Shown one piece after another: positions 8,717 through 58,795 of a stretch of 64,000 nt of DNA (the stretch's first letter is position 1; each line of letters begins with the position of its first letter). Source of the stretch: Selaginella moellendorffii. Taxonomy: Eukaryota > Plantae > Lycopodiophyta. The notes under the pieces are model-generated. The model saw only the letters and a program-made list of their open reading frames with translations, made no database searches and was not told the origin of the DNA. The DNA lies in the NCBI RefSeq assembly GCF_000143415.4, contig NW_003314270.1, positions 742,453 to 806,452 on the forward strand, in the 5' to 3' direction. The position numbers and the translations under genes are program-made.

Positions 8717-8962
8717 CATGCATGCATGCCCGTACGTTTATACCTTTTAAAAATATAGCAAACTACCTTTTAGTGGAATACACCTGGCATTTTTATTGTA
8801 AATCCTCGGTTATATTTATCTTCACTTAAGGGCCGGCCACTACCCTCGTTCCAATCCAACGGCGCGCGATAGAGCTCTTTACCAGAATATTCTTTCCACG
8901 ACGGAATATACCGTGGAATGGTTAAAAACGTGTGCGTTTATATGTCGTCGTGCATGCATGCA
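8717..8962. promoter_or_regulatory. RY/Sph repeats upstream of the VAL gene
   Basis: CATGCATGCATGC at 8717-8729 and CATGCATGCA at 8953-8962. Confidence 0.6.
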
Positions 8963-12100: not shown

Positions 12101-13178
12101 CTCACGTCTGTCCTTTGTCACCAGAGCAAACTGTAGTGCCGCGAAGGAGCTCAGCAACGAAGACATGGACCAGCTCATGGACAGTATGTCAGGTAAAGCC
12201 CAGCAACGAATGTGATTAGAAACTGATAAGCATGTGGTGTGTGGTGTATATATAACAGGTAAACCCGGGAAAGCGGCCAGCTCGCCATCGGGATTGGATG
12301 CCTTGGCAACCGCTGCGGCATTTGGCGACGAGAAGGCAGCATCTCCTCCGCCACCAGCTGCGACAACAAAGCATCCCCGCCACCGTCCGGGTTGTACATG
12401 CATCGTCTGCATCCAGCCTCCCAGCGGCAAGGGTCCCAAGCACAAGCCGACGTGCGTGTGCAACGTCTGCCTGACCGTGAAGCGGAGGTTCAAGACGCTG
12501 ATGATGAGGCGGAAGAAGCGGCAGTCGGAGCGCGAGGCGGAGACGGCGCGGAAGAAGAAGGCGTGGGACAAGGACGACGGGGTGGCCGCGGCGGCGTCCC
12601 CGGCAGAAGCCAAGTGGCTCAAAGGCAACAACAACAACAACAACGTCACCACCACGCCGGAGAGGGGCCAGCAGCGCTACAACACGAGAGAGGCATCGGC
12701 ACCGCCAAAGGCGAGCCCGGCATTGCCAGCGGAGAGCCCGAGCCCGAGTCCGAGCCCGATCAACCCGATCAACCCGTTTGTGACGGAGCGAGGTAAGACG
12801 TTTCCATTCCCAGAGCTGCTGGGAGCGTTTGCGTCACCGCCAGTTCCAGGGGGAGGAGTAGGAGGAGGAGGTGGTGGTGCTACTGCTGTGGCGGATGAGA
12901 ACTTGGCGGGGAAAGGAGGGATTGATCTCAACAGCCAGCCGGAGCGGGACGAGGCGGCACAGCAGAGCAGGCTGAGCATGATGAGGCTGCTGCAGGACGC
13001 GAGCTTGCCGCTGGATATGTATCTCAAGCAGCAAGGGATGGCCAACCTTGCTCCAGGATTTGGTGGTGGTGGAAATGGTGGTGGGAGTGGTGGTGGTGGT
13101 GGTGGTGAGCAGGTGAGTGATGCAAAGCAGCAAATTCAGCAAGCAGCAGCAGAACCCTCCTCTGTGCAAGATGGTTAA
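9179..13178 (+). CDS. VAL: VAL/HSI2-type B3 transcriptional repressor (PHD-like, B3, CW zinc finger, EAR motif); core CDS from ATG 9718, optional upstream exon 9179-9223
   Basis: CMNVRC...[10 protein letters not shown]...[23 protein letters not shown]3 [22 protein letters not shown]...[18 protein letters not shown] domain [34 protein letters not shown]-like IDLNSQP. Confidence 0.95.
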
Positions 13179-24634: not shown

Positions 24635-25928
24635 TCTTCTTATAGAAATCGAGAAACGCTCTTTTCGAGATCAACTAACTTGAATCGCTCTCAAGAACTC
24701 TACTTGCAGGATATGGATGAATAAATCTCTCGCAAATTACGGTAAGACAACTATTCCCCGTGGAACATGAAGGGAAGTTGCGTTGGGAGACAAAACTTTG
24801 TGGAGACTTCCTCTCATGAAAAAACGCAACTTTGCACCACGCACACGTGGACAACACACGAATCCACGTGGTGGATGTTCATTGGGCTGAATCTAGATGC
24901 CTACAATATTCCATCTTGGAATGTCCATTATATACACCATATGCCATTGGCAGGATAGTAATTCTGGTATTCTCTTGTGCGAGAAACTTTTCTAATGGAT
25001 ATCCGATTTTTTCGACGCGGTGGATTCAAAAAATAATTAAGTTAGACCATGCTCTAATTTAGTATTTTAGTAAAAATTATACAAATACTCGATGCTTGTG
25101 CGCGGTATAATTCCATCGAGGTGGAGCAATCATGCAGTCATGCCCGTCCCAACGCTTGTTGTATGACAGTCGGCACGATTTATAAAAAAATTTAGAGTTG
25201 TGTGAACCTTCCCTTCACTTGTTTTTCACTCAATAGCGTTTAAGTTGAGACAAACTTCCAAACTTTCAACCTCAAATCCTCTCTTTTTGACCAACTTTCT
25301 CGAACTGTACGAGTTTTAAGTTTTAACATCTCACAGCCCCATGTGAAGTCACAGGAAACGTTCTTGACACTTTCTGCCGCAAGTCTGCCCAGCTAAAGTG
25401 ATCAAATTAGTATGTAATTAACAAACAACCGACCTTAAGTGGATCATGATCATAGCAAATTAGTATATAAAGCATTCTTTTCCAGTGACCATACCAACCA
25501 TGAATATTAAAATCAAGAACAAATGAAGGTCATTAGCATCCAAACAATTTGGAAGTCCCAATCACAAACAACAAAAGAATCAAGCTGTGCCGTCAAGCTA
25601 TAGACATCGCCTAAGCTCCACTCAAAGTTTATATAACGCCGTCCAGATTCCACTGCCCCGATTTGTCCCGTTCTTTATGCAACTACCTCTGAAAGTATAT
25701 AGTTCCAATGATGAAGAAAACCGTCCATGATAAAACATATTTTATCATCCTTAGCTTACAATTTTAAACGTATACTTTGAAAGATGCTTACAATTAGCAG
25801 GATTCTATTGACCGTCTGAATTTGGAATTTGGACTACTGTATGTACACAGAAGTGCTAAACCTGTGATCAAGAAGTTATTTCTCAGAGGAAAACTTGCAA
25901 ATGCTAAAAATTGCAAGAATATTCTCCA

Positions 25929-26311
25929 TCAACCTTGCACAGGCTTGGGGCAAGAGCAAGTCTTAGCTGCATGTCCGGCCGCACTTGCAACAAGGCTCGC
26001 CTGAGGCCGTTTTCTTGGCACAGGTGCATGTCTCACATTTGCAGTTTGCACCGCATGCGCAGAAAATTCCGTCGTGGCCACTACCACAGGATCAAAAAAG
26101 TTGCCAACCCTTAAATTGAGAAGAATAGTAGAAGCTTACTTTCGTCCAGCAGCTCTGAATATCCGGAGTTGTCGATCAATCAGAAGTTACAGAAACACAA
26201 ACCATGCGTTTATCACTTACTTGCAATTAGCTCCAGATGGGCATGGACTCCCGCAAGCACACCCGCAGTGCAGCCGCAGGTAGCAGAAGCAACAGCAGCA
26301 GTGGTGGCCAT
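25929..26311 (-). pseudogene. Type-4 (Ec-like) metallothionein, copy 1, disabled
   Basis: Same 3-exon layout as copies 2 and 3. A 1-bp deletion in exon 1 (acccgc vs accccgc) shifts the frame, and a 2-bp loss in exon 3 gives TGC AGC TAA. Confidence 0.85.
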
Positions 26312-28092
26312 TTCTCGATCAAGTGAAGATGAGACACAGTGATTCATTCCTTCATTCAATAGCTGTTTACATAGTCTAGTAGTACCCACTAAGAAACATG
26401 AGACCAATAGATTACAGTAAATTGTTTTGATAATCTTACATTTGCAAAACTCTTCTAAGTCTTCTGCCACCAAGCCTTTTGTCCCCGCCCTAGGCTTCAT
26501 CAATCTGCCTGCCGCACCTTCTGACGCATCTTGGGAGACACGCCCAAAGCTGCCCGTTTATAGAATGGCTGCATTATGCACAAGTTTACCAGATTATTAC
26601 TAGATGCAATGTACAAAAGGGATATTAGGGTATATGTGACCTTTTAGTCCCTAGCATAAACCTTTGTCCTATTTAAATGCTCATAAGGTTTAGATTCTAT
26701 TCATTTCAAACTTTTCGGCTATCAATTCTTGAGCTTCAGCCGGGAGTTTTGAGAGCTGCTCGGGGTATGGATGGACTACCACAACAACGAATGTGCTCTT
26801 GCCATTATCATCGAGACAACTTTAAAATCCGAGACTGGGATGGATGAAGACACCTTGCAAATGCTGTGCTCCTTAAGGATTGGCTGGCAAGCGTGTTTAA
26901 CAAGGTTGAGGAGGTGAGATTTAATATCCACCGACTTGATCAACACCCAAAGGAGCATCCTTACATTTGGGAAGATGTTAGCAAATTGCTATTTCTAGGA
27001 ATGGAGCCTGAAATCTTCCAATACTTACACGAATTGGATATTCAACACGAAGATGAGTTGTGGATGCCAACTCATCTTCGAAGGGATGGGAGGAGTCGAT
27101 TCCATATCCAGGCCCAAAGCAATGTCCAGGTAGACTGCCCAGTGGCCGACCATATAAGCAACAGAGAATGGAAGTGAAAATACTTTGGAAAGAATAACCA
27201 AAGATAGATAGATAGATAAATAGATAATTGTGTTTATAGTTGCCGTTAACCTGTGAGAGCATGGGACTTTTGAGTAGGAGGGCAGGAGAGCAGGGAGTCG
27301 GGCATTCAAGCATTTGCTATATGTTTCAGTCTGGGAAGTGGGGGCATGTTGCTTTGATGAGCAGTGCCCTCCAGTCTTCAATGACATAGATAAAGAGCAG
27401 TCATTGCTGCCATGGTCGTGTTTCCCATGAATGCTAGAGGTCTTGGGCATGGAAGTCTAGTGTGGGAAAGAAGAGCCATAGCCGCATGTAGGCAGGGTAG
27501 TCATATATGGCATCTCTAGGCGTGAGCGGCTTCTGTCTTCCGCCTAGTTCAACGTGAAGTGAGTGCATGCTTGTTCGGTATGTTGCAAGGATGCGCCTGG
27601 TGGTGTAGCCTGTGGCGTTGTGGATGCTGGGCCAATGATTCTCCCAGGGTTGATGTCGTGGAGATAGTCCTGGAAGCAGTTGGTAACCAAAAGTGTTGGT
27701 TTATGGATTGCTGGAATAAAAATACTTGGTTCGAAATGTTACGCAATTGATTAGAATATACTTAAAAGAATGGAATGTAATGACATAATGCTGCTTTTCT
27801 TTGCTTTTCTTCATGGAGATTTCTAAAGATTTTCTATAAAAGCCACAAAACGTAAGAAATAAAAAGGACAATCAAAACGCTGAGCATTCCGGACCAGCTT
27901 CTTTGCCGTTTGTTCGCCCAGCATGCGCGAGGAAGTCCTGTAGAAGGAGAGAGAAAAGGTCTTAGAAAAGAAGAAGTCTCTTTTTTCAGATCGAGAAGAA
28001 AGCAGCCTGACCACAGCTGTGATAATCTCAAAGCAAAACTTTATAATTATTATTGATCTAAAAATTGCATAAAGATCTCTCTTTCAAGTCCA

Positions 28093-28501
28093 TCAACCTT
28101 GCACTGGCTTGGGGCAAGAGCAAGTCTCGCAGCTGCATGTCCGGCCGCACTTGCAGAAGGGCTCGCCTGAGGCCGTTATCTTGGCACAGGTGCACGTCTC
28201 ACACTTGCAGTTTTCACCACATTCGCAGAAAACTCCGTCGTGGCCACTATCACAGGATCAAAAGAGTTGCCGAATCAGCATTTAATTGAAAGGAAAACAC
28301 AAAGCTTACCTTCGTCCAGCAGCACCCGTTGCTGCACATCTGTGATCCAAGGATTTGTCAATCAATCAAAAGCTATAAAAACACAAATGATATCGCTTAC
28401 TTGCAATTATCTCCGCATGGGCATGGATTCCCACAAGCACACCCCGCAGTGCAGCCGCAGGTGGGCGTGATAGCAGCAGCGCCAGCAGCAGCGGTGGCCA
28501 T
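28093..28501 (-). CDS. Type-4 (Ec-like) metallothionein, copy 2, 94 aa, 20 Cys
   Basis: Three GT-AG exons give MATAAAGAAAITPTCGCTAGCACGNPCPCGDNCKCAATGAAGRSGHDGVFCECGENCKCETCTCAKITASGEPFCKCGRTCSCETCSCPKPVQG*. TATA at ~28591-28597 and CATGCA at 28606-28611. Confidence 0.88.
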
Positions 28502-29779
28502 TGCAAAACAAAAAGTGAAGAAAAGAGGACGAAAAAACACTCTATTAGAACAGTGAGGAACTTGATTGAGAAATGCCCACAGTTGCCCACTTTTATAGAA
28601 TGGGTCATGCATTATGCAAGGGCAGGCACGAGTTCACCACCAATTGTTACTGCTGGTAAAAGAAATGCCATTATATTATGTTTTGTATGAGATAAGAAAT
28701 CTAATGAAAGGATAGACAATTGCAGATTTGGAATTGTCCATCTACGCATAAGACCAACGATTTGTACCTTGTCAACCTTCCACTCATTATCTCTCCGGAG
28801 CATCCGTTCCCGAGCATGATCGCAAACCAGGACAGAGAGGAGAGCCATTCGTTTGAGTGCACGTTGCAAGGAAGTTCGTTAGATAGTCGTAATAAGGATC
28901 TGTGCAAGACCTGGACAAGCCACCACAGTCTACAAGTTCGATTGTCTCTATAGAAGCGACTGAAGAGAAGGAGGAAAAGAGAAGGAAGTAGTACCCCATG
29001 GTTTGACATGACGGCTCACAAGAGCCTAAGTTATAAACAAAGCGGACCGTGAAAATCTCGTCATTGGACTGTGCACTTGCCTTTGAATGTGATGAGTTTC
29101 CAAGTACGATGCAGAAGAAAAACAATCGAGGCTAGCTTCTTGGCCTGTTCTCTGTGCTTGGAAACAATGCTGCCTGTTACAGAAAAAAATTCTCGCTCAG
29201 CTTTGTCCTGCCTCGCACTGAAGGATCAAAACCACTGTTCCACGGGAAGTTTTTCAAAGCAACGGACGAGTAAGTAAGTAAGACGTGGGCTTTGCTGCTG
29301 TTCCCTGTGTTGTATGAAGACCGTTCGTAATCCTTCGTAGCCTGGCAGCTGTGAAACGAAATGCGCAAATGTACTCATGATTCTGCAAAGTCGAGATTTT
29401 CCACTGGATCTTCGTCAATGCCTGCCACTTCTATTCCCGAGATCTCCAGCGAAGCTGGGTTGAGTACCTCGATGTTTACCAGGGCGTTGATACGAGCACC
29501 AGGGCGTTGATATGATTTGATAGGTCCAAGCTATCAATCCCAGCGCTCTTGACAATTAAACAGGTGATCTCACGAAGCAGCGTTTTACTGGGAGATTGCT
29601 CCAGCAGAATCCGACTTCCGCTAAAACCTCTTCTTTTGCAATCTCGCGGGCTCTGGTGGACGGAAAAGGAAGCTCGGAGTGGTTCTAAAGAGGTGCGACG
29701 GTGGCTACCAGCGCTCCAGTGGTCTCCTTCGCCAAGGATGGTGTTCCATGCAGCCCTGTGATCTCACGCCCTGGTAAAA

Positions 29780-30340
29780 ACACCCTGGTAAAAATCTCTC
29801 TTTTTCTCCATCGTTCCTGTAGAGAAGCTATTGTTTCGTATTTGGCAGGCATTCCTTCTGGCCGGAGGAAAGCAGGACGAGCCAGAGAGGATTTGGTTTT
29901 GGAGCTGTGATCCATGGCTTTAGCTCGGGAGTTCCTTCACGAGCCTGGGAGATAGACAAGAGCAGCGTTCGAGATGTCTTGGAGAGATAAAGTGGTGTTG
30001 GCATTGTCGAAGTGGATATAACTTTCCCAGATGCCACCAATGCTTTCGATCGAAACTTCATCTATCACTTCCGCTAGATCCATAGCTTCCTAATCTATTA
30101 ACCCTGGGACTTGGAATGGACTGCGTCCAGCTCAACAACTCTTTTTCTTTCAAATTCTTCTGTGAACTAATTGTTTCTTCCAAGAAGATATGATCGCTCC
30201 AAATTGGTTCCATGGTGGACGAGGGAGAAAAGATCGAGGCCGTGGATGAGAGTTATCGACAAACAAGTGGAACAAGGCTCGCTAGTTGTTATTTCAGCTT
30301 TCTATCCTTCTACTAAAGCTTCCATTCTCCAAAACGAATC
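29780..30340 (+). pseudogene. 5'-truncated 11S legumin-like cupin fragment (copy A)
   Basis: Closely similar, in the opposite orientation, to ~42330-42930 (FLLAGGK...IHGFSSGV..RAWE, MIAPNWFHG, EQGSLVVI.AFYP), with stops and deletions. Confidence 0.8.
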
Positions 30341-31138
30341 TTATCATCTCTTTTATTTATTTTCCCTATGATATCTTATTTGGCAGGGAGAAATTCTACA
30401 TTCCTCTACAATGTTCTCTTAATGGTTGCAAGGGTATGATAGTTTCAAAATTAAAATTTAAACTTAATAGTATAAAAATGGCAGTTTTAGGGCAACATAA
30501 GAAGTGAAATTAAATTCTCTAAATTTTTCTAATTCAAAATTAGTATATAATGAATTAAATTATATGCTATAATAATATATATTATTTAAAATACACACAC
30601 AGCAAATTATTTATACTTCATTAAAGTCTTGTCACTTCGTTCCATTTTTCATTGGATTTCTTCTCCAGAGATTCTCGGTTATCTTAGAGCAGGGAAGAAA
30701 TTCTTGGATCATTCTGAAAACACATTTTCTCCTTGTATATCATATTACACTAAACCAAAGCTCTTAGCAATTAATATAATAAATCTAAACCTTATCCTCA
30801 ACGTGAAACTTGTGTTATTTGGCATTTTGCGCCAATAATTTGTACATTCTCTCCCTGTGCAAAGCCACACAATATGTGAACAGAAATGCGCTCTGTAGAT
30901 GTCACAGTGTAGACATTGCAGCTCACGGGGCTATAAAGCCCAGCTTGTTTCCTCATTGTTTTCGTGCAAATCTTCACAGCGAGGCGAGGTGAGGCGGTCA
31001 AGTTGGAGCTCTGAAAGTCCTCTTCTCTCACCTGGGCGATCAAGAGCTGGTTGCATTCTCAAACTTTGGTTCAACCAACAAGAGGGTAAGGATACCTTGG
31101 AATGTTGAGAATTGCTCACATCGTCTCTGCAGAGCGTA

Positions 31139-32365
31139 ATGGACAACGGCAACAGCATCGTCCCCATTGTGGGTATCCAGAAGAAAGTCTCTGAGTACGC
31201 TCTGCCTGCAACCGTTCAAACGCACGAGGTCGTCCCCATTGGAGACGAGCTGCTGCTCATCACCCAGCAGGAGTGCAATGGGATCATCAAAGTCACGCTG
31301 GATCCAGCAACCGGCAGCCCGACATTTGCTTCCAAATTCACCCTGGACGGATCCACATACCAAGGAGCTCATGGCCTCCGCGATTCCAAAGCTTACCCGG
31401 GCTATGCCTGGGTGACGCTCCAGTTCGACAACAGCTTACTTCTCATTGATCCCATTGCGACTCAACAGAATATGCCCCCACGGGTGGAGAAGAGGTTTCG
31501 GCTTCCAAAGCCTCTCCGAGGCCCCCACGTCGTCATAGAGGACGGCTCCGACTACCTGTGGGTGACGTGTAAGGACAGCTGCCACGTGGCGAAGGTGAAT
31601 CACCGGGAGTTTGCTGTCGTGGCATACTACCCCTGCAGCCGCCGCCCCATCTTTGTGGCGCCGACACACGAGTACGTGTACGCCAGCATGGACGAGAGTA
31701 GCAGAATATTCTGCCTACAGAGGAATGGTGAAGCCACATCCGAGATTGAGATTCCGGCCGGGAAGGGAAGCACCCCTGTTGGGCTCATCACTGGCCCCGA
31801 TGGAAATGCCTGGTTCGTCCTGCTTGGGAATTTGAAAGGGGGAACCGGTACCTTTGGAAGGATTAGCATCAACAAGGTGACGAACGAGCCATGGATCACC
31901 TGGTTCCATCTCACCACCGCGACTACTGCCGGACTTCTCCATCTCGCTTTCGACAACGGTGTCTACCATCGCAGCCAGGGCAAGAATCTCAAGATCTGGC
32001 TGCTGGGATCTTCAATCGGCTCCCCCGCGAATATCAATGCGGTGTTCACTGTTCACCTGCAGCCAGATCCTAAGAATCCAGAGCAGCTCCACCTCGAAAA
32101 GGAGGAGGTGATCGTGCTGCCTACGCAGTCCTCGATGGCGCACCGCGTGCTGAAGCACAGATCGGGGCTGTTCGTGACGGAGCTGAGCGCCTCTGTTCTT
32201 GCGCACATCAGTGGGACTGCGGTCTGGGGCCCTGACAGAGACGATCAAGCCGCCGACGCATATGCTCTGTGGGGACTGGGCGCGCTCAGCAATCGCGTTC
32301 ACTACCCAAGCTTGCCACTAGCGGTCGCGGAGCCCACACTGAAGCGCAAGAAGATCTTGGAATAG
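31139..32365 (+). CDS. Intronless 408-aa virginiamycin B lyase (Vgb)/NHL-like beta-propeller protein of microbial appearance
   Basis: Repeated blade motifs, including STPVGLITGPDGNAWFV and GTFGRI typical of Vgb-like propellers. TATAAA at 30932 and a 47-nt GTAAG..CTGCAG 5'UTR intron candidate at 31086-31132. Confidence 0.7.
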   Translation: MDNGNSIVPIVGIQKKVSEYALPATVQTHEVVPIGDELLLITQQECNGIIKVTLDPATGSPTFASKFTLDGSTYQGAHGLRDSKAYPGYAWVTLQFDNSLLLIDPIATQQNMPPRVEKRFRLPKPLRGPHVVIEDGSDYLWVTCKDSCHVAKVNHREFAVVAYYPCSRRPIFVAPTHEYVYASMDESSRIFCLQRNGEATSEIEIPAGKGSTPVGLITGPDGNAWFVLLGNLKGGTGTFGRISINKVTNEPWITWFHLTTATTAGLLHLAFDNGVYHRSQGKNLKIWLLGSSIGSPANINAVFTVHLQPDPKNPEQLHLEKEEVIVLPTQSSMAHRVLKHRSGLFVTELSASVLAHISGTAVWGPDRDDQAADAYALWGLGALSNRVHYPSLPLAVAEPTLKRKKILE

Positions 32366-32399
32366 TTTTGGTGTTTTAAAAATAATTTGCTAAGTGTTG

Positions 32400-35300
32400 C
32401 AAGTAATGTTAAAATTTTATAATTATAAACATGTTTATAATTTATAAACACAAGATTAACCTTATTGCATATCAGCCATTAGATGGTAGAATAAAGAAAG
32501 AATATTTTAAAAAATGTTTAAAAAAGTTTATAAATTATATACATGTTTATAAATTATAAATACAAGATTAATCTAAATGAATAACAACCATTAGATGGTA
32601 GAATACCCTAGATTATCCAAGCATATTTTAGGTATATTCACTACCATCTCAATTTGCTTAAGCAAACCAAAAGTATATTTAGCTTTTTAATTTGTTTGCT
32701 TCACATCTTTGTTCCTCTATGTTGCAAAGTTAAGTTTATCAAGAAGCACAGTATTAATATCAACTAAATTATATTTTAAATCTTTGTTCTTGATACTAGT
32801 GCAAAAATATCATGTATAATTGCTCAAATAAAAAAGTTCCTGGGTCTCCCTCTAAATATTTCTTTATTTTTTTAAATCTTCAACACTTGTCTATGTACCA
32901 ATTGCAATCATACCAATCCTTATTTGCTACTTGATAAAGAATAATTACATCCACTCCTATTCTCACGTTAGATTGTGTTTGCACACTTGAACTATTATCA
33001 TAGACACTAGCTTTCACCTTTGCTAGTTTGTTTCTTAAGAGAAATGGATTTCCATTAAATGGGATATTATGGTGTATAGTATAGTGAGGAAAAAGTCATT
33101 GATTCAAACACTTCTATATTTTTGGAGCATGAAATATCAAAGAGAATTCAATAATTAACACCAATATTTTATCTTGTGTTACTCCATTTTCTATTGTTTC
33201 ATTTGGGGCAAGAGTTTTTGCTTCAATTATAAACTTTGCTTCAGTTTATAGCAGATCATCTTCATTACCAACAATTACCTATAGAGTCTTTGTAAAATTG
33301 CCCTATAAAAGTCTTCAAATTCCTATGGAGCTTCCCACAATGTTATGACTCTAATAGATTGAAGCATTTACTATGCTTCTATAAAAACTTATTTTTAAAA
33401 TTAGAACTAATTGCTCATTTATTTCTATTCCTAAGAAGTCAACTAGATCACTTATGCTCTACTATTTATATGCTCAAACTATAACTAAATTTTTTCCTAT
33501 TTCTTATGTGCCACAAAAAATTCTAGATTCCCCTTTGTTCTAAATTACTCTAGCTTAATTCATTAAACTTATTGTATTTAGTAGCTCTACTTTAGCATAG
33601 TTGTGCATACTTCCTACTTTGCTAAGAGAATTTCTATAATAGTTTGAACTTGTCAGCCAAAATGGTACTTTCTTTTTTACTAGCTTATCTTAAAAGATTT
33701 TAAAAGAAATTGTTGTGTAAACACCACTTTAGTTGCATATTAAAAAATGTTTCAATAAAGTTATATTTTAATTTATATTTCTTGTGCTTTTTTTGAAGTT
33801 TAGTGCAAGCTTGATCATTAAGGACTAGGTTGTAAGAACCTTTAAATGGATAAACCTATTCCTATGGTATAAAGGTCTTGCTTTCAAGTATTTGTTATGA
33901 AATATGAAAGATGTTTATCCATACTTTCTACCAAGGTCCTTTTTCTGATTGGAGGTGATTATTAGAGTAGCTTACTTGAATTCCTTGGAAGTTGTGGCAA
34001 AAACAGTATATGTGGATGAAGACTTCCACTTGGGGTGCAACTTTGATTAAGCCTGATTACCATTGAATCACTCAACTTTGAACTATCATCAAGTGTATTA
34101 GAAATTGAATACCCTTATTTCAATGGATTGACCACAAATTCCATTATTAGTGTATTAAGATATAAAGAAAAAGTTTGATTTGAAGTTGAGGGTATAAAAT
34201 TTTAAATCATTTCTACTCCTATAGTTAAGTGAGTGATTAAAGAATCTCTTGTTACAAGTAATTGTTAAAGAGATTGAAGGATTCCAAGTTTTGGAGCTTA
34301 TTGAGCTCATTAGAAACATTACTTTAAAAGGATAAATTCAAGTTTTTAGATAATGCCAATTAAATTGTTAGATAAAACATTTATAGAGGTGATAGGAAGA
34401 GAATCTAAAATTTAGATTATTCTTTTCCAATTGAGAAAATGACATAACCCTTTATTTATTGGAAAAAATTATAGCTATCCTCAAAGACGTGCCTCTAGTT
34501 GAAGTATACAATGTTGCTAAAAAGATTTACTAGCTTCCAATCTAAGATTAAAAGAAAATCTCAGTTTATGGTTATATGAAATTGTGGTCTAGATCTATAT
34601 AAACATTTTTTTACATGCTACAGACAATAGAATTTTGCCTAGATTCCTCCTTGAAACAAATAATTTACTATAATGTGTAGTTTTTTTTCTTTTAATATAT
34701 AGTCAATATTCATTAGAAAATATCAATATAAACATTTATAAATAAATATTGCAAAGGTATTATAAAATATTCATCTTCATGAGATATTGTAAATAATTGA
34801 AGAAAAAAATATGAGAGACAATTCATGAGGGTTCAAATATAGAGGAAAAGGCCCATAAACAAAAGTACACCCTTTTTTTCAATTAGTTAAAAGTCAGAAG
34901 AGTAGCGAGCTACAATTCTTAACTTTCATTTATGAAAGCGTATTATTGTATGGAAGTATAATGGATTGTAAGCAACTAAAGAAAATGACTTGAAAAATGA
35001 TTTATAATGGTTCAAATATAAAGGGAAAAAGCTTATGAATAAGTTTTTTTTTAATCAATTAAGAGTTTTAAGATACTTAGGGTTAATGGTCATTGAGTTT
35101 AACTATGGATGACTTCTTGGGAAGGTTAAATTTAAGAATTTACATTTTGTATCAAACAAGTTTTAGGTTTGACTTTGTTAGTTGGTTAAAATAATCACAC
35201 TACATCTTGATATTGATATATGGTGATCTAGCTTGCTATAGCTAAGTTAAATTTGAGGGTAGAATATCAAGAGAGTGGAGTTCTTGAGAGAGTTAGAACT

Positions 35301-38300
35301 TTTAACTTTCATCCACAAGGGTATAAATTTGCAAAGAAATATAGTGAATTGTAAATAGAAAAAAAAGCAAGTCAAAAAATTATCTATAAAGGTTCAAATA
35401 TAAAGGAAAATAATATATAAATAAGAGTGCACCTGTTTTTCTACATGAAAGGGTTTTGGTATATTGACTCTTTAGCTACAAGTAAAAGTTGGTGCCAATA
35501 TGATATAGAAACCATATTAAACAAAGTTTTTTATTTTTAACATCCTTGGGTTTGAATAGTATTGGGTTGGGTGACTTTCTAAGAAGTTCAAATTCAAAGT
35601 TTACAAATACCTATACTATATCTTTTAAATTTAAATAATCTTCAATATAACCATCATCAAATTTTCTTGACTATACTATAACTCTTAAATTTAGATAAGC
35701 TTTATTATAATCATTATCAACTTTTCTTGAAACTAAATAGATCTAATAGCATTTCCTTATAACATAATTTAAATACCATAAAAAAAAGAAAATTTAAGGT
35801 TTGCCTATGGAACACCCATTGAACAAGATAGAGGTCAATACAATAAATTACTTGACCTTAGGGGGGGATAAGTTAATTGCCATATTATATCTATAAAGCT
35901 ATGAATAAAATATTTATTTCCCATATTCCTTATTAGATGCTTAGTTAAGAGATGAGAATCTGAAGTTAATCAAAGAAAAAAAAAACTCCAAGACTACACC
36001 TTTTTTCCTATAGAAATTTATTATTTCTAGGAAATTCAACTATGATGGAATATTATAAGTTAGATCCTTGAGTTAATCCTTCTACTTCATTATTCCCTAG
36101 TTTTAGAAATTCTTTATTGCATTGAATTCATAGTGCTCACCCTTGCAATATAGAATTATAATAAACAACTAAGTGCTTGTTTTTTATAAACCATCAAAAC
36201 ATTAACTCTCTTACAGAAAAAGTCTAAAGGGCTTTTAATGGAATTTATCAAATCTAAGACTTTGGATCCTTGTGAAATATAACAAACTCCCGGATGAATC
36301 CATTGTTGATGTGTAGAATAGTCCTAATAAAAGTTTAAAAGGATCAATGAGAACAATTGAGATTTTATGTCCATGGAGAAATCGAAAGAGGAAGAGTGAT
36401 CATGAGGTCCAGTACTATTAATTCTTTACTGAAATTTTTCATTAAGTTGGATTAGTCATTAGTATTAAACTTTGATTACAAATGAATTAAAGAAAATTTT
36501 AAAAGCAAGAAATCATAACCATTAAATTAAAGAATATCCTAGGATTCTAAGTATATACTTTATACCTATAATAAAAAATTTAAACAAGTAAGAAATTAAA
36601 CTTGATTAAAAATGAATTAGAAAAGTTTAGGAGAGAAAAAGCACAGCCATAGATTTTAAGATATCCTAAAATATAATTGAATATTTTTAAGTATATTTTT
36701 ATATACCTCTTTAAAGTAAACAAATATTGTTATAAATTTAAATACACTGGGCAACTATATGATCCTAAAGGTAGGATTTGGAGGGTGGGTACAAACTTAT
36801 TGTTTATCAAGTCTTAAACTTTAAATTAGACATATGAGAATTGTTTAATTTCTCATAAATAGGTTTTGTATTACTCTTATTTCATTAATAAAAATGGAAA
36901 CTTCCTCGTTTTATTTTTTTACAAGTGTTTAGATTTTTTCTTCACACAAGTGTGATGATATAAGCTGATAAGTCTAAACTATCCATGGAAAAATTGCAAT
37001 AATTACTTTAAAAAACTATAAGTACATTCATGTAATACATCTCCTTTTTATGAGAGAGATAAGATTATAATATTATAATCAATTTGGCATGGCTCCAAGC
37101 AAAACCTTTCCAAGCAACACTTTTGAATATATTGAGAGGGCATTAATATCATTATAGGGCCATTTTCTTTTGAGAATTTACCAAGGAAAGCAGAAAGAAC
37201 TTCAAAACTTTTATGAATATATAAAAATATTTTACCTTTAAGTATGTGTATTTAAAATGCTGAAATATTGACTTCAAATATGTATATGATATACAATATG
37301 GGATAGGAGTTTATCACTTTGTATATATATATTCAAGGGTCATGAAAAGTGAATGAGTTAGTAGGAGTTAAAGCAAATAAATGTATACCAAGAGCATTAG
37401 TAATACTAATCCAATGTTATGTAGTCAACTTACAAGAGAATAAAGGTAGATGAAGTTAGAGATAATTTAAATTTTAGCCACTCTTCCTATGATTCTTTTA
37501 CATTCAACAACTTATTTTCAAATTAAATACTAAAAAAATATTTTTATACCTCAAAAGAAAATAGAGAGAGAAAAATATCTATATAAAGAAAAATCTTCTC
37601 TACAATCATTTCTACTATGAATCTTTAAGACATTGTTGTACTTTCTTCAAATAAAAATATTAAGTTATTACTTAGTTTTAATGAATTTTTTTGTGAATAT
37701 GGGTGGATTCTTGATGTTGTGGCTAGTGCAATCAATTGCCTCAATTGCAAGCAAGATTTTCTACGCTTCTTTCCATTTTCATAAAGCATGTTGTTCATAA
37801 TTGATTTTTTTTTAGACTTAAATAATTAATTATAATCACCTAAAGCAAGCATTTTGGTAGTAGAGTCTAAAGGATTAACAAGGTTTTTAATTTGTTAAGA
37901 ATAAAACCTTAATTATAAAGTTTTTCTACCAACTATCATTTATAATTAAACTATAGCTTTAGAAACTCTATTTAATCTTTTATTTCCTCTTCAAATTTAA
38001 GTTTAAAACTTCTCACTTAACTAAACTAATTCTTTATAAAAACTCTTTTATTTCTTTTACAAATTTCTTTTTCATTGTTGATAAAGTTATTTTTTAACTT
38101 ATAGTTTTAGTGCTCGTCACTCTGTAAATCGTAAGATATTTCGCTTTGCCGATCCTCCACACTTTGTCTAGATGCTTATCTTGATGCCCGATTATGCTGC
38201 ATGTGAGGACAATAAGAAGGCCAAGTTTACTGGACAGTATATATTGTGCTTGTTTCTTTTAATATTTTATTTACTTCTTGTTTTGGATTTTCCTAATCAA

Positions 38301-39480
38301 ATTCACACTCATTTGTTATTTTTTAATATATATATATATTAATGTAAATCCAAAGCCACCATAACTTATAGAAACATTTATAGACTTTTAACAAAATTGT
38401 TATTTTATAGTGTTACTTATCAAGTTCTTTTGAAATAAATTACTAAAAAGGAAAGTACTGTTATGGTTGACAATATTAATCTTTTGTAAAAAGTCTTTTA
38501 ATAAAGCAAGAGGTATTATTTCTAACAAGCACACCATTTATTAAATATAATATATTTAATGAATTAACTAAAACATTTGTTATAGCACATAATAAAAAAG
38601 AATTTCCCTCACAACTTAAGTATTTAGATAATAGAAAAAAGATGAATCTAGCTAACTTCTCATAAATAAAAGTTTTAATTTTAGTTTTAAAAATATATTT
38701 TATAAAAGCACAGTAAATGTTTCAAACTATTATAGTTATGATAATATAAAAATTTGAGGAGTTTTTTGAGATCAATTTATAAAGCCTTTTTAAAAATTGT
38801 TATTGATGAAGATAATTTTCTAAAGATACCTAGAATTTAAGTGAAATATTTTGTAAATAAAAAAATAAAAAATGAAACTTTACAAAATGAAACATTAATA
38901 CCAATGTTTAAGCTTTTACATGTTTATAATAGTATAGTAGATGGAGAGAAGTTGATTGATATGTTTTTATATTTGTAGAGCTTGAGATAGCAAAAAGCAT
39001 TATAATATCCCATTTAAGTAAGAATTTATTTCTCTCAAAAACAAACTAGCAAGATGTTTATAATAATTATTCAAGTATGCAACTATAAACACAATCTAAT
39101 ATGATAAAAAAAAGTGAATAAAGCTATTCTTTATCAAGCAATAAATAAATATTAGAAAAATTAAGATTAATATACAGGACAAGTGTTGAAGGTCTAAAAA
39201 AATTTATTTTAATACTATACTCTTTAATAATATTATAAGTGTTATAAATTTAAGTTGGCAACATAACGGAATATATATTTTAAATAATAAGGATGTTGAG
39301 TATATGGAGTGCTTTTGTGCCACTAGGGCAATGCTTATGGAGTGGCCAACCACTTATAGTCTACTCTAAAGGTATAGTTCATCAACTTTTGATAATTAAC
39401 TAATAACTAATTTTAGATCATATAAACATAAAAATAAAATCTAATAATTTTAGAATAATATAAAGTTTATATATACACCA
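32400..39480. mobile_element. Highly decayed, AT-rich element with long imperfect inverted repeats (class unresolved; boundaries approximate)
   Basis: No ORF of 60 aa or more. Colinear reverse-complement anchors 32878-32891/39178-39191, 32930-32943/39125-39138, 32968-32980/39087-39099 and 33020-33033/39039-39052. Internal direct repeats ggttcaaatata at 34830, 35009 and 35391. Confidence 0.65.
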
Positions 39481-40513
39481 AAAAGTGAGTTTTTAAAATT
39501 TAGTTAATCTCATTGGGTCACTAAATAATAATTTTATAAGATTTTTCATGGGTATGTTCTTCATGTTTGAGTTAGTAAGTTTGAAAAGGAAATAGAAATA
39601 AATACATATCGAGGTTGCTGAAAAATTATCTTCCTTTGGGTGGAGGTTTTGTCTCAAGATAGGAAATGAAACTTTGTGATATTCTTTTAATCTATTTGAG
39701 AACTAGCAACAAAATTCAAGATTTATGAATCTGCAAAGTGCAGAAATTTATTTCAAGTTGGTTAAAAAGCATTAAAAGCATAGAAGTTTTAATCTTAACA
39801 ATTAAAAGATAAGAAGCTAAATATTTTCTACCCATTGCCCTAGATCTTCCCCTATTAAATGTAAGGAGGGCATTTATAGAAAATCATAAAGGTGCTTTGA
39901 TAATCTTAATAAACACCTTATGGACGTTATCAACCATGCCAACCAACCACAAAAGCATAGCATTTAAAATTAGTCTTCAGATGCCAATTTCCGTTAAATG
40001 CATGGTGAGCAGAAGCTTGAGTGATTATCTTGGTAGTAAACATAACTTCTTTTTTTTTCCTTCAAATCCTAGCACCTCACGCTAAATCAAATGAAATCCA
40101 GATCTGGGAGTCTGGCATAAATTGAGACAAAACTACATGCTATGCTCCTTTACCATCTAATCAATCTATACCAACCAAAAGAAACATCCTTAAAGCTTTG
40201 GTTATGTTTGGGAAGATGTCAAAAGGTTGCTGTTTCCACAAATCTTCCAGTACTGGGATTATTTGTGGGATTTGTGGATAGTTTATTACATTACATTACA
40301 TTAACTCCCATAAATAGCCAATTCCTTGACTGAACTGGAATGGCGTTGTTTATCTCTGCTTACTGCACATTAGTGAAGTATATAAGAATTTACCGGTGCA
40401 GTAACAATTGCTGGTGTCTCATGCATGACCCATTCTATAAAAACGGCAGCTGTGGGGGTTTCTCAATCGTGTTATCGATAGTTTTCTTTCACTTTTTTGT
40501 TTGATCTCTAGCA

Positions 40514-40936
40514 ATGGCCACCGCTGCTGCTGGAGCTGCTATCACGGCCACCGGCGACTGTACTGCTGGATGTGCTTGTGGGAATCCATGCCCATGCGGA
40601 GATCATTGCAAGTAAGAGATATCTTTGTGTTTCTAGAACTGTTGATCTATCAACAAATCCCTTAATCACAGATGTGGAGCAATGGGTAGTGTTGCTGGAA
40701 GAACGTAAGTTTCTGTTATGGATCCTTTTCTTTCCAATATATACATTATGCTAGTTTTGCAACTCTTTTGATCATGTGCTAGTGGCCACGACGGAGTTTT
40801 CTGCGAATGCGGTGCAAATTGCAAGTGTGAGACATGCGCCTGTGCCAAGAAAACTGCCTCAGGCGAGCCCTTCTGCAAGTGTGGCTGGACATGCAGTTGT
40901 GAGACTTGCTCTTGCCCCAAGCCCGTGCAAGGTTGA
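40514..40936 (+). CDS. Type-4 (Ec-like) metallothionein, copy 3, 94 aa, 19 Cys
   Basis: Exons 40514-40611, 40672-40704 and 40783-40936 (285 nt, in frame) give MATAAAGAAITATGDCTAGCACGNPCPCGDHCKCGAMGSVAGRTGHDGVFCECGANCKCETCACAKKTASGEPFCKCGWTCSCETCSCPKPVQG*. CATGCATG at 40420-40427 and TATAAAA at 40436. Confidence 0.9.
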
Positions 40937-41244
40937 TGGATCAAGGAAGAAAATTCTTGCAATTTTTAGCTCAATAATGATTTGATTTGCAATTGTTCTG
41001 CGTAGACATATTGTGGTTCAAACTCTGGTCAAAATGATGCCAAGCAAATGCTTCCTCATCTGTCTTATATTTAATTGACTGGAATATAGGAATAATAAAA
41101 GTGAAGTATTTTTCGTCATGAACGGCTTTTCCTCATCATATGAGTTGTAGTCTTTATCGAGACAAATCGGGGCAGTGGAACTTTGAGTGGTCTATCTGTA
41201 TTAAATTCCTCCTTTTTTTGGTCTACATTGGAAAGTAAAGAGAC

Positions 41245-41375
41245 TTCGGTTTTGGAGTTTTGGAGCTGTGATCAGGGTGGCCGTGGATCAACCTGGGAAA
41301 GTTATATCCTCGTCCACTTTGACAGTGTTCCAAGCCCCAAGGTCCGTTGCTCTCCACCGTTTTGGACGTGATGGT
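41245..41375. pseudogene. Scrambled short fragments of the legumin-like gene
   Basis: ctgggaaagttat.tcctcgtccactttgaca, ccaag.cccaagg and tctccaccgttttggacg match pieces of 42554-42701. Confidence 0.65.
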
Positions 41376-42058
41376 TCTTGCAGCGACAGATGAATCCTCG
41401 CTCCATGTATTTATGAGTTGTAGTTTGTCGAAAAAAAAAAAAAAAAAAAAAAAAGTAGAAACACACAGTTCAAAGAAACTCGTGCATCTCCACGTACCAC
41501 TGCCACAATTCAACCACTTGAAAATTGGTTTCTTCGTCGGCTATGTTGTGTTTCAGATGTCCGAGGGAGCTTTGGCCGACTGTGGCTCCTCCCAAGCTTC
41601 AACAAAGGCCAGATTGGTGATACATGGTTGTGGTTCAAATTCCGGTCAAAACGATGCCAGAATGGGAATAGGAATAAGTATTTTTCGTATTTCGTGAAGT
41701 ATTTATTATTATTCTAGTCAATTAAATATAAGACAAATGAGACTGTGGCTCCTCCCAAGCTTCAGCAAAGAGATTGGTGATACATGCACTGCTGACGTGA
41801 GTACTTGTGCATATTCAGCCCAGTGCCACTAGCTGCATGCATTTTATAGTGGAATTCCTTGTTCATTGGTGAAAGTCGCTGGAGGAGGAATTCTTTTTGT
41901 TAAAATTGTTGTAAAATTGTAATCACCAATTTGGAGCAGTCCAGTGCTCCAATTCCTGAGTCGGCCAAGAACAAAGCGACAAGTGAAAGCTCTCTTGGAC
42001 ATATGAAGCACCACATAATTAACAAAGAAGGTGGTGATTTTATTGAGCCAAACAGACT

Positions 42059-43406
42059 TTAGCGGCATAAAAAAGGCTCAATCCACGCTTCACGAGCAAA
42101 AATAATAGCTTCCTCTTGGTGAGCACTCTGGACCACATTTGCCTTTTCTTCGCGAATATTGAGCATGCGCGATAGAACACGTAGAGGAATGCCTCTGTAA
42201 ACCGAATTTCTCCTCGACAAGTAAGAGATCATAGGCCTAAACACACACTAAAAAAGAAAGTTAAAAAAAACTATGGAGAGTTTTGGATACCTGTGGGATG
42301 TGACGAATGTGATGTAATGGAAGCTCTCCTCGCTGGAAGGATAGAAAGCTGGAACGACAACGAGCGACCCTTGTTCCAGTTCTGCGTCGAGAACTCTCTC
42401 GCCACTGGGATCCACGACCTCGATCCTTCCTCGTCCATGAACGACGTAGAGGATCTGATGGCTACCATGGAACCAATTTGGAGCGACCATGGCTCCCTGG
42501 AAAAAACTAGTATTAACTCACAGAAGATGGAGGTCTCTACCTTACACTCCATACCAAGTCCCAAGGTTCGTAGAATAGGAAGCTTGTAGCTGCTGAGCTC
42601 TCGGATCTCTCCACCGTTTTGGACGCGAACGTCGGGATGGATCTCGATCGATCGAAAGCGTTGGTGGCATCTGGGAAAGTTATGTCCTCGTCCACTTTGA
42701 CAATGCCAACACCGCTTTGGCCCTCCAAGACGTCTCGAACGCTGCTCTTGTCCAGCTCCCAGGCCCGTGAAAGAACTCCCGAGCTGAAGCCATGGATCAG
42801 AGCTCCAAAACCAAATCCTCTCTGGCTTTGCTCGTCCGGCTTTCCTCCGGCCAGAAGGAATGGCTGCCAAGTAGAAAAAAAAAAAGCTTCTCTACAAGAA
42901 CGATGGCGGAAAAAGAGAGGTTTTTACCTTTGTGTGACGATTGTCAGCCAGATGTGCGACTCCCATGATTTCCAGCTCCTGGTCTCCGCCGTTGTACCAC
43001 CACAAAGCAACTCCTTGCGGAACTGCGACAACATCTCCTCTCTCTCCCGTGTCTTACGATCAACAAGAGAGGTGAGAATCCCAACAAGTCCACCACCTAT
43101 CGTTTGAGAACCATAGAACCAACCTTACGAAAGCTTAGCGAAGAACAAGGAGAAAGTTTGAGAACTATAGCTATACCTCAAGTGACAATGTGGAGCAGGG
43201 AAGAGTAGAGATAGAATGGAAGCAAGAGACCCCTACGCTTGAGCATCGTCCGGCCAGCCACAACTCCGAGCTCTTCGAAAACTCCGGAGACTTCCCAGAC
43301 TTCCAATTTTCCACCGTCGGATTTGAGCGCCTGCGGCCTCAAATCGCTCCATGGACGACGCGATGAGCGCGAGAAAAAATGCGAGAAATCCTCTCAGTGA
43401 TCTCAT
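42059..43406 (-). pseudogene. Full-length 11S legumin/glutelin-like bicupin gene (copy B) with frameshifts and a stop
   Basis: Signal peptide MRSLRGFLAFFLALIASS; SDGGKLEVWE..GVVAGR..GLLLPFY; DVVAVPQGVALWWYNGG; FLLAGG; IHGFS..VLSRAW; PDVRVQNGG..LPILRTLGLG; AMVAPNW; YVVHGRGRIEVV; SVYRGIPLRVL. TATAAA at ~43476-43481 and CATGCA at ~43497-43502 on the minus strand. Confidence 0.85.
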
Positions 43407-43895
43407 ATCTTTTGGATGATCGAGAGAGCGAAGGCTTCCTGGCTTTGGCGCTGTGATGGATCCTCGCTCCATGGATTTATAAGCTGGGAGAATTCGTGCA
43501 TGGAGGTAGCGTGCCTGCAAAAGTTTTCACAGAAAGAGGGAAATGACACTGCTCCACTGCTCCGCCATGGCAGCTCCTGGGCGATCGTTTGCCCTAATCT
43601 CTGGGCGCTAGCCCTAAAAACCGGGGCATACTGTTCTTCTCTCCAAGATGCCCTTCACGGGCATGAGGCAGCGCGGTAGGGTTCTTACTGGACAGCGCAC
43701 TCGATCTGGAAGCTAGGGTTTCCATGACGCCTTGATCCACACGCCGCATTCTTCCTGGATCGGCGCCACTCCCAGGTTCGCAAACTTCTCTAGATCTGAG
43801 GCGTGCGCGGCCCGTGCAGTGGGAAAATCCGATCGATGACCGCTCGTGCATAGCCAGGATCGATCGATCGACTCGCCCGCCCTAAGATCTCCAGG

Positions 43896-45614
43896 ATGGA
43901 GGAGGGAAATCCTCAAGAGATCGCGGTGGCCGGCCCAAGCCGCGATCGCCCGGCGGATTTCTCCGTGCCGCGCAAGAAGCGCGCGATGAAGAGCCAGCCC
44001 CGGCAAATGCAGAGCAGCATCGACGTCCTGGCGGAGGTACTGGCGGAGCGATGCGGCGATGCCGAGGGGGCGGTGTGCGAGTCCGAGGAGATCGAGGAGG
44101 ACGATGGCTGTGGTGGCGAGGACGAAGAGGGCGGCAGCGAGGACACCAATCCCGACGATAGCATCGCCCGCGAGCGTCGGAGTAGCGGCCTGGACAAGGA
44201 TCGAGGAGGAGGAGCAAAGAAGCGGGGCATGGAGCCTTACAAGTTCACGCGCTGTAAGCTCAAGAACCGGCACTTCCTCCGCGAGGGACAGGGGCTGGCG
44301 ATGATCCGGAGCCTTGGGCTCGAGCAGTTCTTGCTCCACACCGAGGTTCCCAGATTCAACAAGAGCTACTGCACGGACTTCATCACGACTTACAGCCACC
44401 ACAAAGGTGCCGGGGTGGTGAATGGCCGGCTCATCAAGATCACTGCGCAGGCCGTGAGGAAGCTCACGGGTCTACCTCTTGGAACCCGAGGCGAGCGGGC
44501 CATCGTTCACGACGTCCGGGCGGAGGATCTTCCAGTGATGGACAGGCTCATTCCGGGGCTCAAACGGACGAGCTATGGATACGACTTGCGGTATCTGCGA
44601 TACAAGGACCAGACCGAGACGTTCGTGGCAGTGGCGAGTGCTCTGTCCGAGAAGCTGGTCTGCCGGACTTTCAAGCTGACTTACATCAAGGGGGCGATCA
44701 TCCTGGCCATGGAGACGTCGCTGCGGCTCAAGGTGCTCATGCAGTGGGCCGACTTCATGGCCGAGACGATCAAGAACGCGATCAAGCTGACGAAGCTGAG
44801 GACGAGGAACGTGAGGTTTGCGTTTGGGGAGTGGCTGACGGGGATGATCGAGAACGCTCTCGGGGAGGAGCTGGAAGGGGAGAAGGGAACCGGACTGGTG
44901 GAGAACGGGTGCAGCGACTCCCAGGGTGAGATGAAGTTCCAGGAGAAGGAGGAGCCGATGGAAAACGACGTTGCTTTGCTACTCATGGCGGCAGCTCCAG
45001 CTTTAGCCCCAGCTCCAGAGAGTGTGGTTGCGATCGAAGCTCCACAGCAGCAGCAGGAAACGCTGCCGCTCGTCGCTCTAACGCCTCACAAGATCAAGAA
45101 GCGCGTGAGAACAGCGATGCCAACCACGACGGCGTGCGGCAGCGACTCTACGAGCGAGGAAGTGAAACGTCTCCAGCAGCAGCTAGCCGACGCCGAGAGA
45201 CGCGAGCGATGGTACGTGACGATGAATCTCAGCATGGCCCGCGAGCTGGAGAGGCTGAGGCTGGAGCTGGAGTCGGTCAAAGGCGGGCAGAGCGCGGCGC
45301 TGGCCGTGAAAGACGCGGCGGAGCCGAGGGAGCCAGCGGAGGAAAGCAAGGAAATGCCACTGGCTCTCAGGAGCTCCACGCCGAGGAACGGAGAGGAGGC
45401 ACAGATCGACAGGGTCATCGAGAGCCTGGAGAAGAAGAGCGCTGTCCACGAGCAGGAGGTATCACGGCTCAAGCAGGAGCTGGAGGAGCAAAGAAAACTC
45501 ATCGAGCTGGTCAAGAGGAGCCGGGGGATTCCACTGGAGGCGATCGATCGACGCGAGCAAAAGCGATTGCGTCGCGACTTGGAGAAGGACAAAGCCAAGA
45601 CGAATCCATCCTAG
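43896..45614 (+). CDS. Intronless 572-aa protein: acidic N-terminus, transposon-ORF-like central domain, coiled-coil C-terminus
   Basis: Long GC-rich ORF. DFITTY...VNGRLIKITAQAVRKLTGLP resembles extra-ORF domains of plant retroelements (recall). Heptad-rich C-terminus. Confidence 0.65.
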   Translation: MEEGNPQEIAVAGPSRDRPADFSVPRKKRAMKSQPRQMQSSIDVLAEVLAERCGDAEGAVCESEEIEEDDGCGGEDEEGGSEDTNPDDSIARERRSSGLDKDRGGGAKKRGMEPYKFTRCKLKNRHFLREGQGLAMIRSLGLEQFLLHTEVPRFNKSYCTDFITTYSHHKGAGVVNGRLIKITAQAVRKLTGLPLGTRGERAIVHDVRAEDLPVMDRLIPGLKRTSYGYDLRYLRYKDQTETFVAVASALSEKLVCRTFKLTYIKGAIILAMETSLRLKVLMQWADFMAETIKNAIKLTKLRTRNVRFAFGEWLTGMIENALGEELEGEKGTGLVENGCSDSQGEMKFQEKEEPMENDVALLLMAAAPALAPAPESVVAIEAPQQQQETLPLVALTPHKIKKRVRTAMPTTTACGSDSTSEEVKRLQQQLADAERRERWYVTMNLSMARELERLRLELESVKGGQSAALAVKDAAEPREPAEESKEMPLALRSSTPRNGEEAQIDRVIESLEKKSAVHEQEVSRLKQELEEQRKLIELVKRSRGIPLEAIDRREQKRLRRDLEKDKAKTNPS

Positions 45615-58620: not shown

Positions 58621-58795
58621 TGTGAGGGCCAAGTGTATAGCTATGATGCCGTATACTAATATTAGCGTAATGGGATTTTGGTAGCTATCGGATTGGTTTC
58701 AATCCGGACCACTTGCTCCTGTATATAAATTAGAGTTTTTGGGTTAATTGATATGCACATTTCTATATTCCCTTTCTATATTCCAAACACTCACA
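58621..58795 (+). repeat. 5' LTR (TG...CA)
   Basis: Ungapped match to 63441-63615. Confidence 0.95.

Follow-up and report, generated by a model that had tools for sequence, protein, structure and literature searches.

Results

Metallothionein and legumin-like genes at the locus

The stretch of 64,000 nucleotides analysed here (hereafter the window, to which coordinates refer unless another scaffold is named) comes from Selaginella moellendorffii, contig NW_003314270.1, positions 742,453 to 806,452 of the forward strand, and carries a cluster of two duplicated gene families, the Ec-type (type 4-like) metallothioneins (MTs) and the legumin-like bicupins. An earlier reading made from the letters alone, here called the sequence-only reading, had described the region as an island of seed-maturation genes of these two families in an apparently seedless plant. 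This description holds in its outline: the host is a lycophyte of the order Selaginellales, self-comparison of the window finds three MT copies and three legumin-like pieces, and the Ec/type 4-like MT and legumin lineages are recovered by the PEC profile on MT exon 3 and by Cupin_1 and 11S matches on cupin exons. Pfam and homologue searches of both families used single exons as queries. The members of the cluster are as follows.

25929-26311, minus strand: MT1, pseudogene of an Ec/type 4-like metallothionein, recognised by self-comparison and its lesions
28093-28501, minus strand: MT2, intact, three exons (28501-28401, 28339-28310, 28246-28093), 94 amino acids with 20 Cys
29787-30347, plus strand: cupin B, degraded relic of the exon 3-4 region only, with stops and deletions in frame
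40514-40936, plus strand: MT3, intact, three exons (40514-40611, 40672-40704, 40783-40936), 94 amino acids with 19 Cys
~41200-41480, minus strand: legumin-like fragment, internally deleted
42059-43406, minus strand: cupin C, near full-length legumin-like bicupin pseudogene with five exon equivalents

The same arrangement occurs on the other haplotype, scaffold GL377615.1 (locus L002), which was reached via the allelic Vgb-like protein P0121 and is collinear with window 21263-46458 at ~94% identity. The order there is a leucine-rich repeat (LRR) gene, a WD40 gene, MT1, MT2, cupin B, the Vgb-like gene, an AT-rich block, MT3, cupin C, an open reading frame (ORF) of 569 amino acids and a response regulator. 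Therefore, the linkage of MTs and cupins is not haplotype-specific, which answers, as far as the other haplotype goes, a check that had been set beforehand. Additionally, an origin of the cluster as a simple inverted duplication of one MT-cupin pair was considered and rejected, because the orientations clash, MT2 and cupin B being divergent and MT3 and cupin C convergent.

Metallothionein genes

The three MT segments (25903-26318 and 28045-28612 on the minus strand, 40421-40982 on the plus strand) share 74-80% identity in pairwise self-comparison, with MT1 and MT2 at ~80%, and no fourth copy was found by tblastn within the window. The introns of MT2 are of the GT-AG type, and exon 3 matches the Pfam family Metallothio_PEC with 44.5 bits in MT2 and 38.5 bits in MT3, both above the cut-off of 31.8. 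The MT translations hold three Cys-rich blocks of 8, 6 and 6 Cys. In the search of solved structures, the top match of MT exon 3 was the betaE domain of wheat Ec-1 (2KAK), with an E-value of 1.2 that is not significant alone; of its six positions of paired Cys (CxC), five are aligned, and the final pair is half matched, its second Cys lying opposite a Ser. MT1 is a pseudogene, because its exon 1 has a 1-nt deletion, its exon 2 is truncated and its exon 3 carries a TAA and a 2-nt deletion, in agreement with the earlier report of a dead copy.

In the central region of wheat Ec-1, two conserved His residues give a mononuclear Cys2His2 zinc site. The first of them is present in MT2 and MT3, displaced by two residues, and the second (GEH) is an Asn in both MT2 (GENC) and MT3 (GANC). 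Therefore, this zinc site could not be formed in the same way, and MT2 and MT3, judged from their translations, are Ec-like proteins that fail one hallmark of their angiosperm counterparts, namely the two His of the central region.

Between MT2 and MT3, the nonsynonymous divergence (dN) is 0.063 and the synonymous divergence (dS) 0.24, and the resulting ratio of ~0.26 indicates that the two genes have been under purifying selection since their duplication. The MT2 protein is identical across both haplotypes; the gene is conserved and presumably functional. The two alleles of MT3 differ by six nonsynonymous and two synonymous changes, including Cys14Gly, by which the window allele has lost a Cys; MT3, although intact, therefore looks relaxed, and it is a fast-evolving, drifting copy.

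Searches for homologues differed in reach. A word index of proteins, queried with exon 3 of MT2 (plus four codons) and with the exon 1 ORF, gave no candidates, a result that says little as it is limited by query length and word matching; an exhaustive search of representative proteins, again queried with exon 3 of MT2, yielded only four matches at E <= 1e-3, the Cys-rich query of ~50 amino acids being too weak against 1.8 billion sequences; and the Atlas search with MT exon 3 scored < 0.9, which is a lead only. One of the four matches of the exhaustive search, the protein KAJ7562868.1 of Diphasiastrum complanatum, of 48 amino acids, passes the Pfam PEC threshold with 35.9 bits. PEC-type MTs are thus found in two lycophyte orders, those of Selaginella and Diphasiastrum, and therefore the PEC/Ec-type MT family, as delimited by this profile, is older than seeds. 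The sequence-only reading had proposed that the whole module predates seeds, and this stands for the MT family and falls for a working storage module.

Outside the window, the environmental protein P0126 (SRR5690606-derived, 123 amino acids) passes the PEC threshold with 42.4 bits. It carries a signal-peptide-like N-terminus and repeated CKCGxxCKCDPCxCPKT units, and looks like a secreted, repeat-type PEC-like metallothionein.

Legumin-like copies

Cupin B and cupin C share 72% DNA identity in self-comparison, and 75% identity in the linker exon by tblastn. In cupin C, the Pfam family Cupin_1 is matched by exon 2 with 32.5 bits and by exon 4 with 46.4 and 42.4 bits; the best matches among solved structures are all 11S globulins, with 7S proteins appearing only at E >= 0.005, and in the Atlas the closest cluster is 'Legumin B' (0.94). 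By these sequence matches, the cupin copies are of the legumin (11S) lineage and derive from a formerly secreted bicupin. The linker exon (...DATSAFDRNFIYRLREIHPDV...) has no NG(L/I)EE..C motif when compared by eye with the consensus.

The sequence-only reading took cupin C for an intact full-length gene, and this has to be withdrawn. Its signal-peptide ATG (43406) is out of frame with the first cupin segment, the cupin frame is without any start codon, and exon 1 terminates in an in-frame TGA (43180-43178). A rescue by another splice donor that bypasses this TGA was rejected, as no donor holds the frame with exon 2. The window allele has additional frameshifting deletions of 16 nt in exon 2 (near 43045) and 19 nt in exon 3 (near 42648), together with in-frame deletions of 12 nt and 15 nt. 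Pairwise alignment shows that the TGA and the N-terminal frame break are common to both haplotypes, whereas the other allele is ancestral at the sites of the 16-nt and 19-nt deletions and has a frameshifting 4-nt insertion of its own; moreover, the other haplotype is without window 41327-42189, by which the end of cupin C exon 5 is gone. Because private decay in each haplotype lies on top of common lesions, cupin C was apparently dead before the haplotypes diverged.

The fragment at ~41200-41480 joins a TATA-like CATAAAT and a 5′ leader to a piece of the linker exon, has poly-T in place of the RY region, and is partly absent on the other haplotype. Judged from their reading frames, all three legumin-like copies are pseudogenes, and cupin C is inactivated on both haplotypes.

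RY-TATA promoters

In Arabidopsis, the gene AT2G23240 is AtMT4b. The ABI3 regulon of Arabidopsis includes cruciferins and other cupins as well as AT2G23240, which is possibly an indirect ABI3 target and whose promoter is without an RY-like motif (PMC3458547). The B3 domains of ABI3, FUS3, LEC2 and VAL1 recognise one and the same Sph/RY element (PMC8136769, PMC5934628). At the Selaginella locus, the following promoter features were found.

26557-26580, minus strand: MT1 promoter relic, TATAAA retained, RY destroyed by a 3-bp deletion (alignments, both haplotypes)
28590-28612, minus strand: MT2 proximal promoter block ATGCATGACCCATTCTATAAAA, RY core (28611-28606, ATGCATG) and TATA box, ~96-110 nt before the ATG
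40420-40443, plus strand: MT3 proximal promoter, full RY CATGCATG (40420-40427) and TATAAAAA
43475-43502, minus strand: cupin C promoter, RY core CATGCA (43502-43497; CATGCAC) and TATAAAT (43481-43475)

MT2, MT3 and cupin C each have one RY core on the gene strand, separated from the TATA box by a gap of 8-15 bp (14-21 nt from start to start), and the TATA boxes lie ~76-96 nt before the ATG. The close placement of RY upstream of TATA in these three genes, and its loss in the dead MT1, had both been noticed from the letters alone and are borne out, the loss on both haplotypes. The 22-nt block ATGCATGACCCATTCTATAAAA is the sole long identical non-coding run between MT2 and MT3. This RY-TATA block is kept on the other haplotype except for one base in the MT2 TATA box; there, the MT3 promoter is identical and the cupin C promoter is conserved.

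Four loci in the window have an RY element no more than 25 nt upstream of a TATAAA, compared with 0.63 +/- 0.70 in 200 block shuffles, of which a single one reaches four. Besides MT2, MT3 and cupin C, this count includes a (CATG)n run that precedes the VAL gene described below. This excess is modest evidence, as MT2 and MT3 are duplicates and hence not independent, and the fourth locus is of the (CATG)n kind.

A VAL gene nearby

A VAL repressor gene had been noted near the cluster, and it is present ~12.5 kb from the MTs, with zf-CW and a B3 motif.

~9718-13178, plus strand: VAL/HSI2-type gene with PHD-like zinc finger, B3, zf-CW and EAR-like motif (motif scan, exon translations, Pfam)

Its zf-CW, at 34 bits, exceeds the cut-off of 27.5, and a single B3 exon, at 29.1 bits, falls short of the 30.1 required, the rest of the B3 domain lying in adjacent exons. 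The translation of the plus strand at 9.6-13.2 kb gives a PHD-like N-terminus, the B3 signature motif, a further conserved block and an EAR-like IDLNSQP. At least four unrelated genes (glutaredoxin-like, DTW, LRR and WD40) lie between VAL and MT1. No evidence connects the VAL gene functionally with the cluster, and a trans-acting factor works without linkage in any case; the gene is most simply a coincidental neighbour.

At 8717-8728 and 8951-8962, in the intergenic DNA directly preceding the VAL gene, there are two tandem RY-like runs (CATGCATGCA...). These could be sites of VAL auto-regulation or of regulation by ABI3, or plain (CATG)n microsatellites.

Other features of the window and public annotation

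Within the cluster lies an intronless gene for a Vgb-lyase-like beta-propeller (31139-32365, plus strand), whose nearest relatives, at 43-48% identity, are soil-bacterial (Longimicrobiaceae) and fungal proteins and two proteins of Diphasiastrum complanatum. That a second lycophyte has it too speaks for an early acquisition. Its ORF (31139-32362) occurs exactly once in assembly GCA_000143415.2, on scaffold GL377574.1, and the 90% cluster of the protein contains proteins named Selaginella moellendorffii. The gene is followed by an AT-rich block of 7.6 kb (window 32400-40200) with 25-33% GC, compared with ~45-50% in the flanks, and no ORF longer than ~57 amino acids. Near its ends there is weak inverted similarity (32866-33070 versus 39203-39002, and 33249-33697 versus 38822-38426); repeat scans found one 60-bp tandem repeat in two copies and no inverted repeats delimiting the block. 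The block is on both haplotypes, with window 35236-37489 absent from the other, and may be a degenerate transposon.

Beyond cupin C, an ORF of 572 amino acids (43896-45614, plus strand) starts ~490 bp from the cupin C start codon; it has a C-terminal coiled coil and no Pfam family, and is conserved on the other haplotype as the 569-aa product. Farther away, ORFs at 60091-63005 (plus strand) encode the protease, reverse transcriptase, RNase H and integrase of a Ty3/gypsy-type retrotransposon, and a 173-bp direct repeat (58621-58793 and 63441-63613, 90% identical) may represent the long terminal repeats of this element. No Rfam RNA family was found in the window.

Comparison with the public annotation (GenBank GCA_000143415.2, scaffolds GL377574.1 and GL377615.1) reveals that the MT1 pseudogene is annotated as coding for 106 amino acids (gene call at window 25794-26311), that the MT2 models of 112 and 116 amino acids have no PEC match on record, and that neither MT3 nor cupin B is called as a gene on either haplotype. 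The annotated cupin C products, of 243 amino acids in the window and 322 on the other haplotype, sidestep the lesions, and in the 243-aa model residues 1-75 come from translating the linker exon out of frame. The intervals with annotation problems are window 25794-26311, 27872-28501, 40514-40936 and 42059-42870, and L002 17836-19326. The genes are new members of known families, and the annotation errors are worth fixing.

Discussion

Based on the gene structures, family assignments, lesions and motifs, and on their presence on both haplotypes, all of which are observed, we propose as the reading that probably holds that the locus is an old cluster in decay, made up of two duplicated families, with live MTs and dead legumin-like bicupins, whose RY-TATA promoters would once have wired both families to the B3 network. 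The two families may have been connected with the ABI3/VAL-class B3 factors as their angiosperm counterparts are, and the MTs would be activated by a programme of the maturation or desiccation type, in spores, the megagametophyte or the embryo. Birth-and-death of the old MT/legumin cluster has left only the MT side alive, with MT2 conserved, MT3 drifting and MT1 dead, and the protein-storage half no longer functions at this locus. Birth-and-death evolution was already part of the sequence-only reading, and duplicated families with dead copies are indeed what the cluster contains. A function of the RY elements, the pattern of expression and a role in metal storage are what we infer from these observations.

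The alternative that survives best holds that the RY hexamers are incidental, that the conserved block is simply a core promoter (TATA box and flanks), that the MTs are ordinary metal-homeostasis or stress genes unconnected with a B3/maturation programme, and that the adjacency of the cupins is a by-product of local segmental duplication. Several observations weigh in its favour and against B3 wiring. Within 500 bp upstream of MT2, MT3 and cupin C there is neither an abscisic acid-responsive element (ABRE) or G-box (ACGTG-type) nor a second RY, so each promoter has a single RY, unlike typical ABI3 targets, and the full CATGCATG is present in MT3 only. The hexamer CATGCA/TGCATG occurs 46 times in the window versus ~30 expected from base composition, and the window-wide RY-TATA excess rests on three to four loci only, two of which belong to the duplicates MT2 and MT3 and so do not count as independent. 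With an overall identity of 79%, 22 matching bases in a row are not significant by themselves, and the cupin C promoter lies within a ~490-bp divergent intergenic region with the 572-aa ORF at 43896 on its other side, so that its conservation may be due to this shared intergenic region. Low haplotype divergence near MT2 was likewise rejected as a sign of constraint, since it is not unique to MT2, the cupin B relic being as similar between haplotypes. However, the RY-TATA distance is similar in two unrelated families whose angiosperm homologues belong to the seed-maturation, ABI3-regulon sets, the RY has been lost specifically in the sole dead MT copy, and just one of the 200 shuffles reached the observed count. 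Incidental RY hexamers are accordingly an explanation that we regard as unlikely, while taking it seriously. Control of the MTs by a B3 factor through RY is plausible and a reasonable hypothesis, to be held tentatively.

A decaying cluster with RY-TATA promoters could also be extended backwards in time. In such a scenario, an RY-TATA module driving Ec-type MT and legumin-like genes would go back to the ancestor that lycophytes share with seed plants, where it would have belonged to spore or embryo maturation under ABI3/VAL control, and S. moellendorffii would now be dismantling the protein-storage arm while retaining the zinc-storage arm. This is a speculative extension, which we consider doubtful and somewhat less probable than incidental hexamers; if it were true, MT2 and MT3 would be a ready-made reporter for a pre-seed B3 regulon.

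The sequence-only reading went further, to a working linked module that stores zinc and protein, perhaps in spores or embryos, with RY as the shared control and the VAL repressor gene close by as part of the picture. Its components (the two gene families, promoters with RY and TATA, and VAL) are truly present, and the linkage is maintained on the other haplotype. However, all three of the legumin-like copies are pseudogenes, with lesions of cupin C common to both haplotypes and private frameshifts in each, no fewer than four unrelated genes stand between VAL and the MTs and cupins, and the unrelated Vgb-like gene and the 7.6-kb AT-rich block sit inside the supposed island. A working module of this kind is therefore very improbable and, for its cupin half, largely refuted, and the locus should be read with caution, and not as a functional storage island, since its legumin side is dead. 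That cupin C is really intact and its lesions are assembly or sequencing errors is the least probable explanation of all and can hardly be entertained: several lesions do fall within the short repeats (GA)n and GATCGATC, which are prone to errors or slippage, but the TGA and the N-terminal frame break are common to two independently assembled haplotype scaffolds, the different indels of 4 to 19 nt in each haplotype and one deletion of ~860 bp are too large and numerous for base-calling errors, and the annotators' models of cupin C are truncated ones only, of 243 and 322 amino acids.

In its significance, this work shows that a seedless vascular plant has PEC/Ec-type MTs and keeps them under purifying selection, and that a homologue occurs in a second order of lycophytes. 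The 22-nt RY-TATA block offers a compact, testable promoter with which to probe lycophytes for a working ABI3/VAL-RY circuit. Additionally, the public annotation is corrected with regard to the unannotated MT3, the MT1 pseudogene called coding, the MT2 models without a PEC match and the cupin models that evade the lesions. A literature search found no open-access paper describing Selaginella type 4 MTs or legumin-like genes; as its coverage is incomplete, this is weak evidence of novelty.

Compared with known systems, MT2 and MT3 resemble the plant Ec/type 4 MTs (PF02068; wheat Ec-1, Arabidopsis MT4a/b) in scoring above the curated profile threshold and in having three Cys-rich blocks, and their exon 3 resembles the betaE domain of wheat Ec-1 in the pattern CxCGExCxCxxCxC ... 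CxCGxxCxCxxC. However, wheat Ec-1 has 17 Cys, whereas MT2 and MT3 have 19-20 and an N-terminal block with four CxC pairs; their host, moreover, is a seedless lycophyte. Cupin C resembles the 11S globulins or legumins (glycinin, cruciferin, prunin) and the legumin-like bicupins of non-seed plants in its two Cupin_1 domains and signal-peptide-like N-terminus, and is closer to the 11S globulins than to the 7S vicilins by its best sequence matches. Its five exon equivalents, that is, four introns, can be set beside the four introns reported for gymnosperms as the ancestral legumin gene structure. Unlike the 11S globulins, cupin C lacks both the hypervariable acidic insert and the Asn-Gly processing site, its inter-chain disulfide cysteines are not recognisable, and the reading frame is broken in every cupin copy on both haplotypes. 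In their promoters, MT2, MT3 and cupin C differ from typical RY/Sph (ABI3) targets in having one RY and no companion ABRE or G-box, with the full 8-mer only in MT3, while they resemble RY/Sph-regulated genes in carrying a proximal CATGCA core, ~100 nt or less from the start codon, and in having maturation genes as their angiosperm homologues (PMC3458547, PMC8136769).

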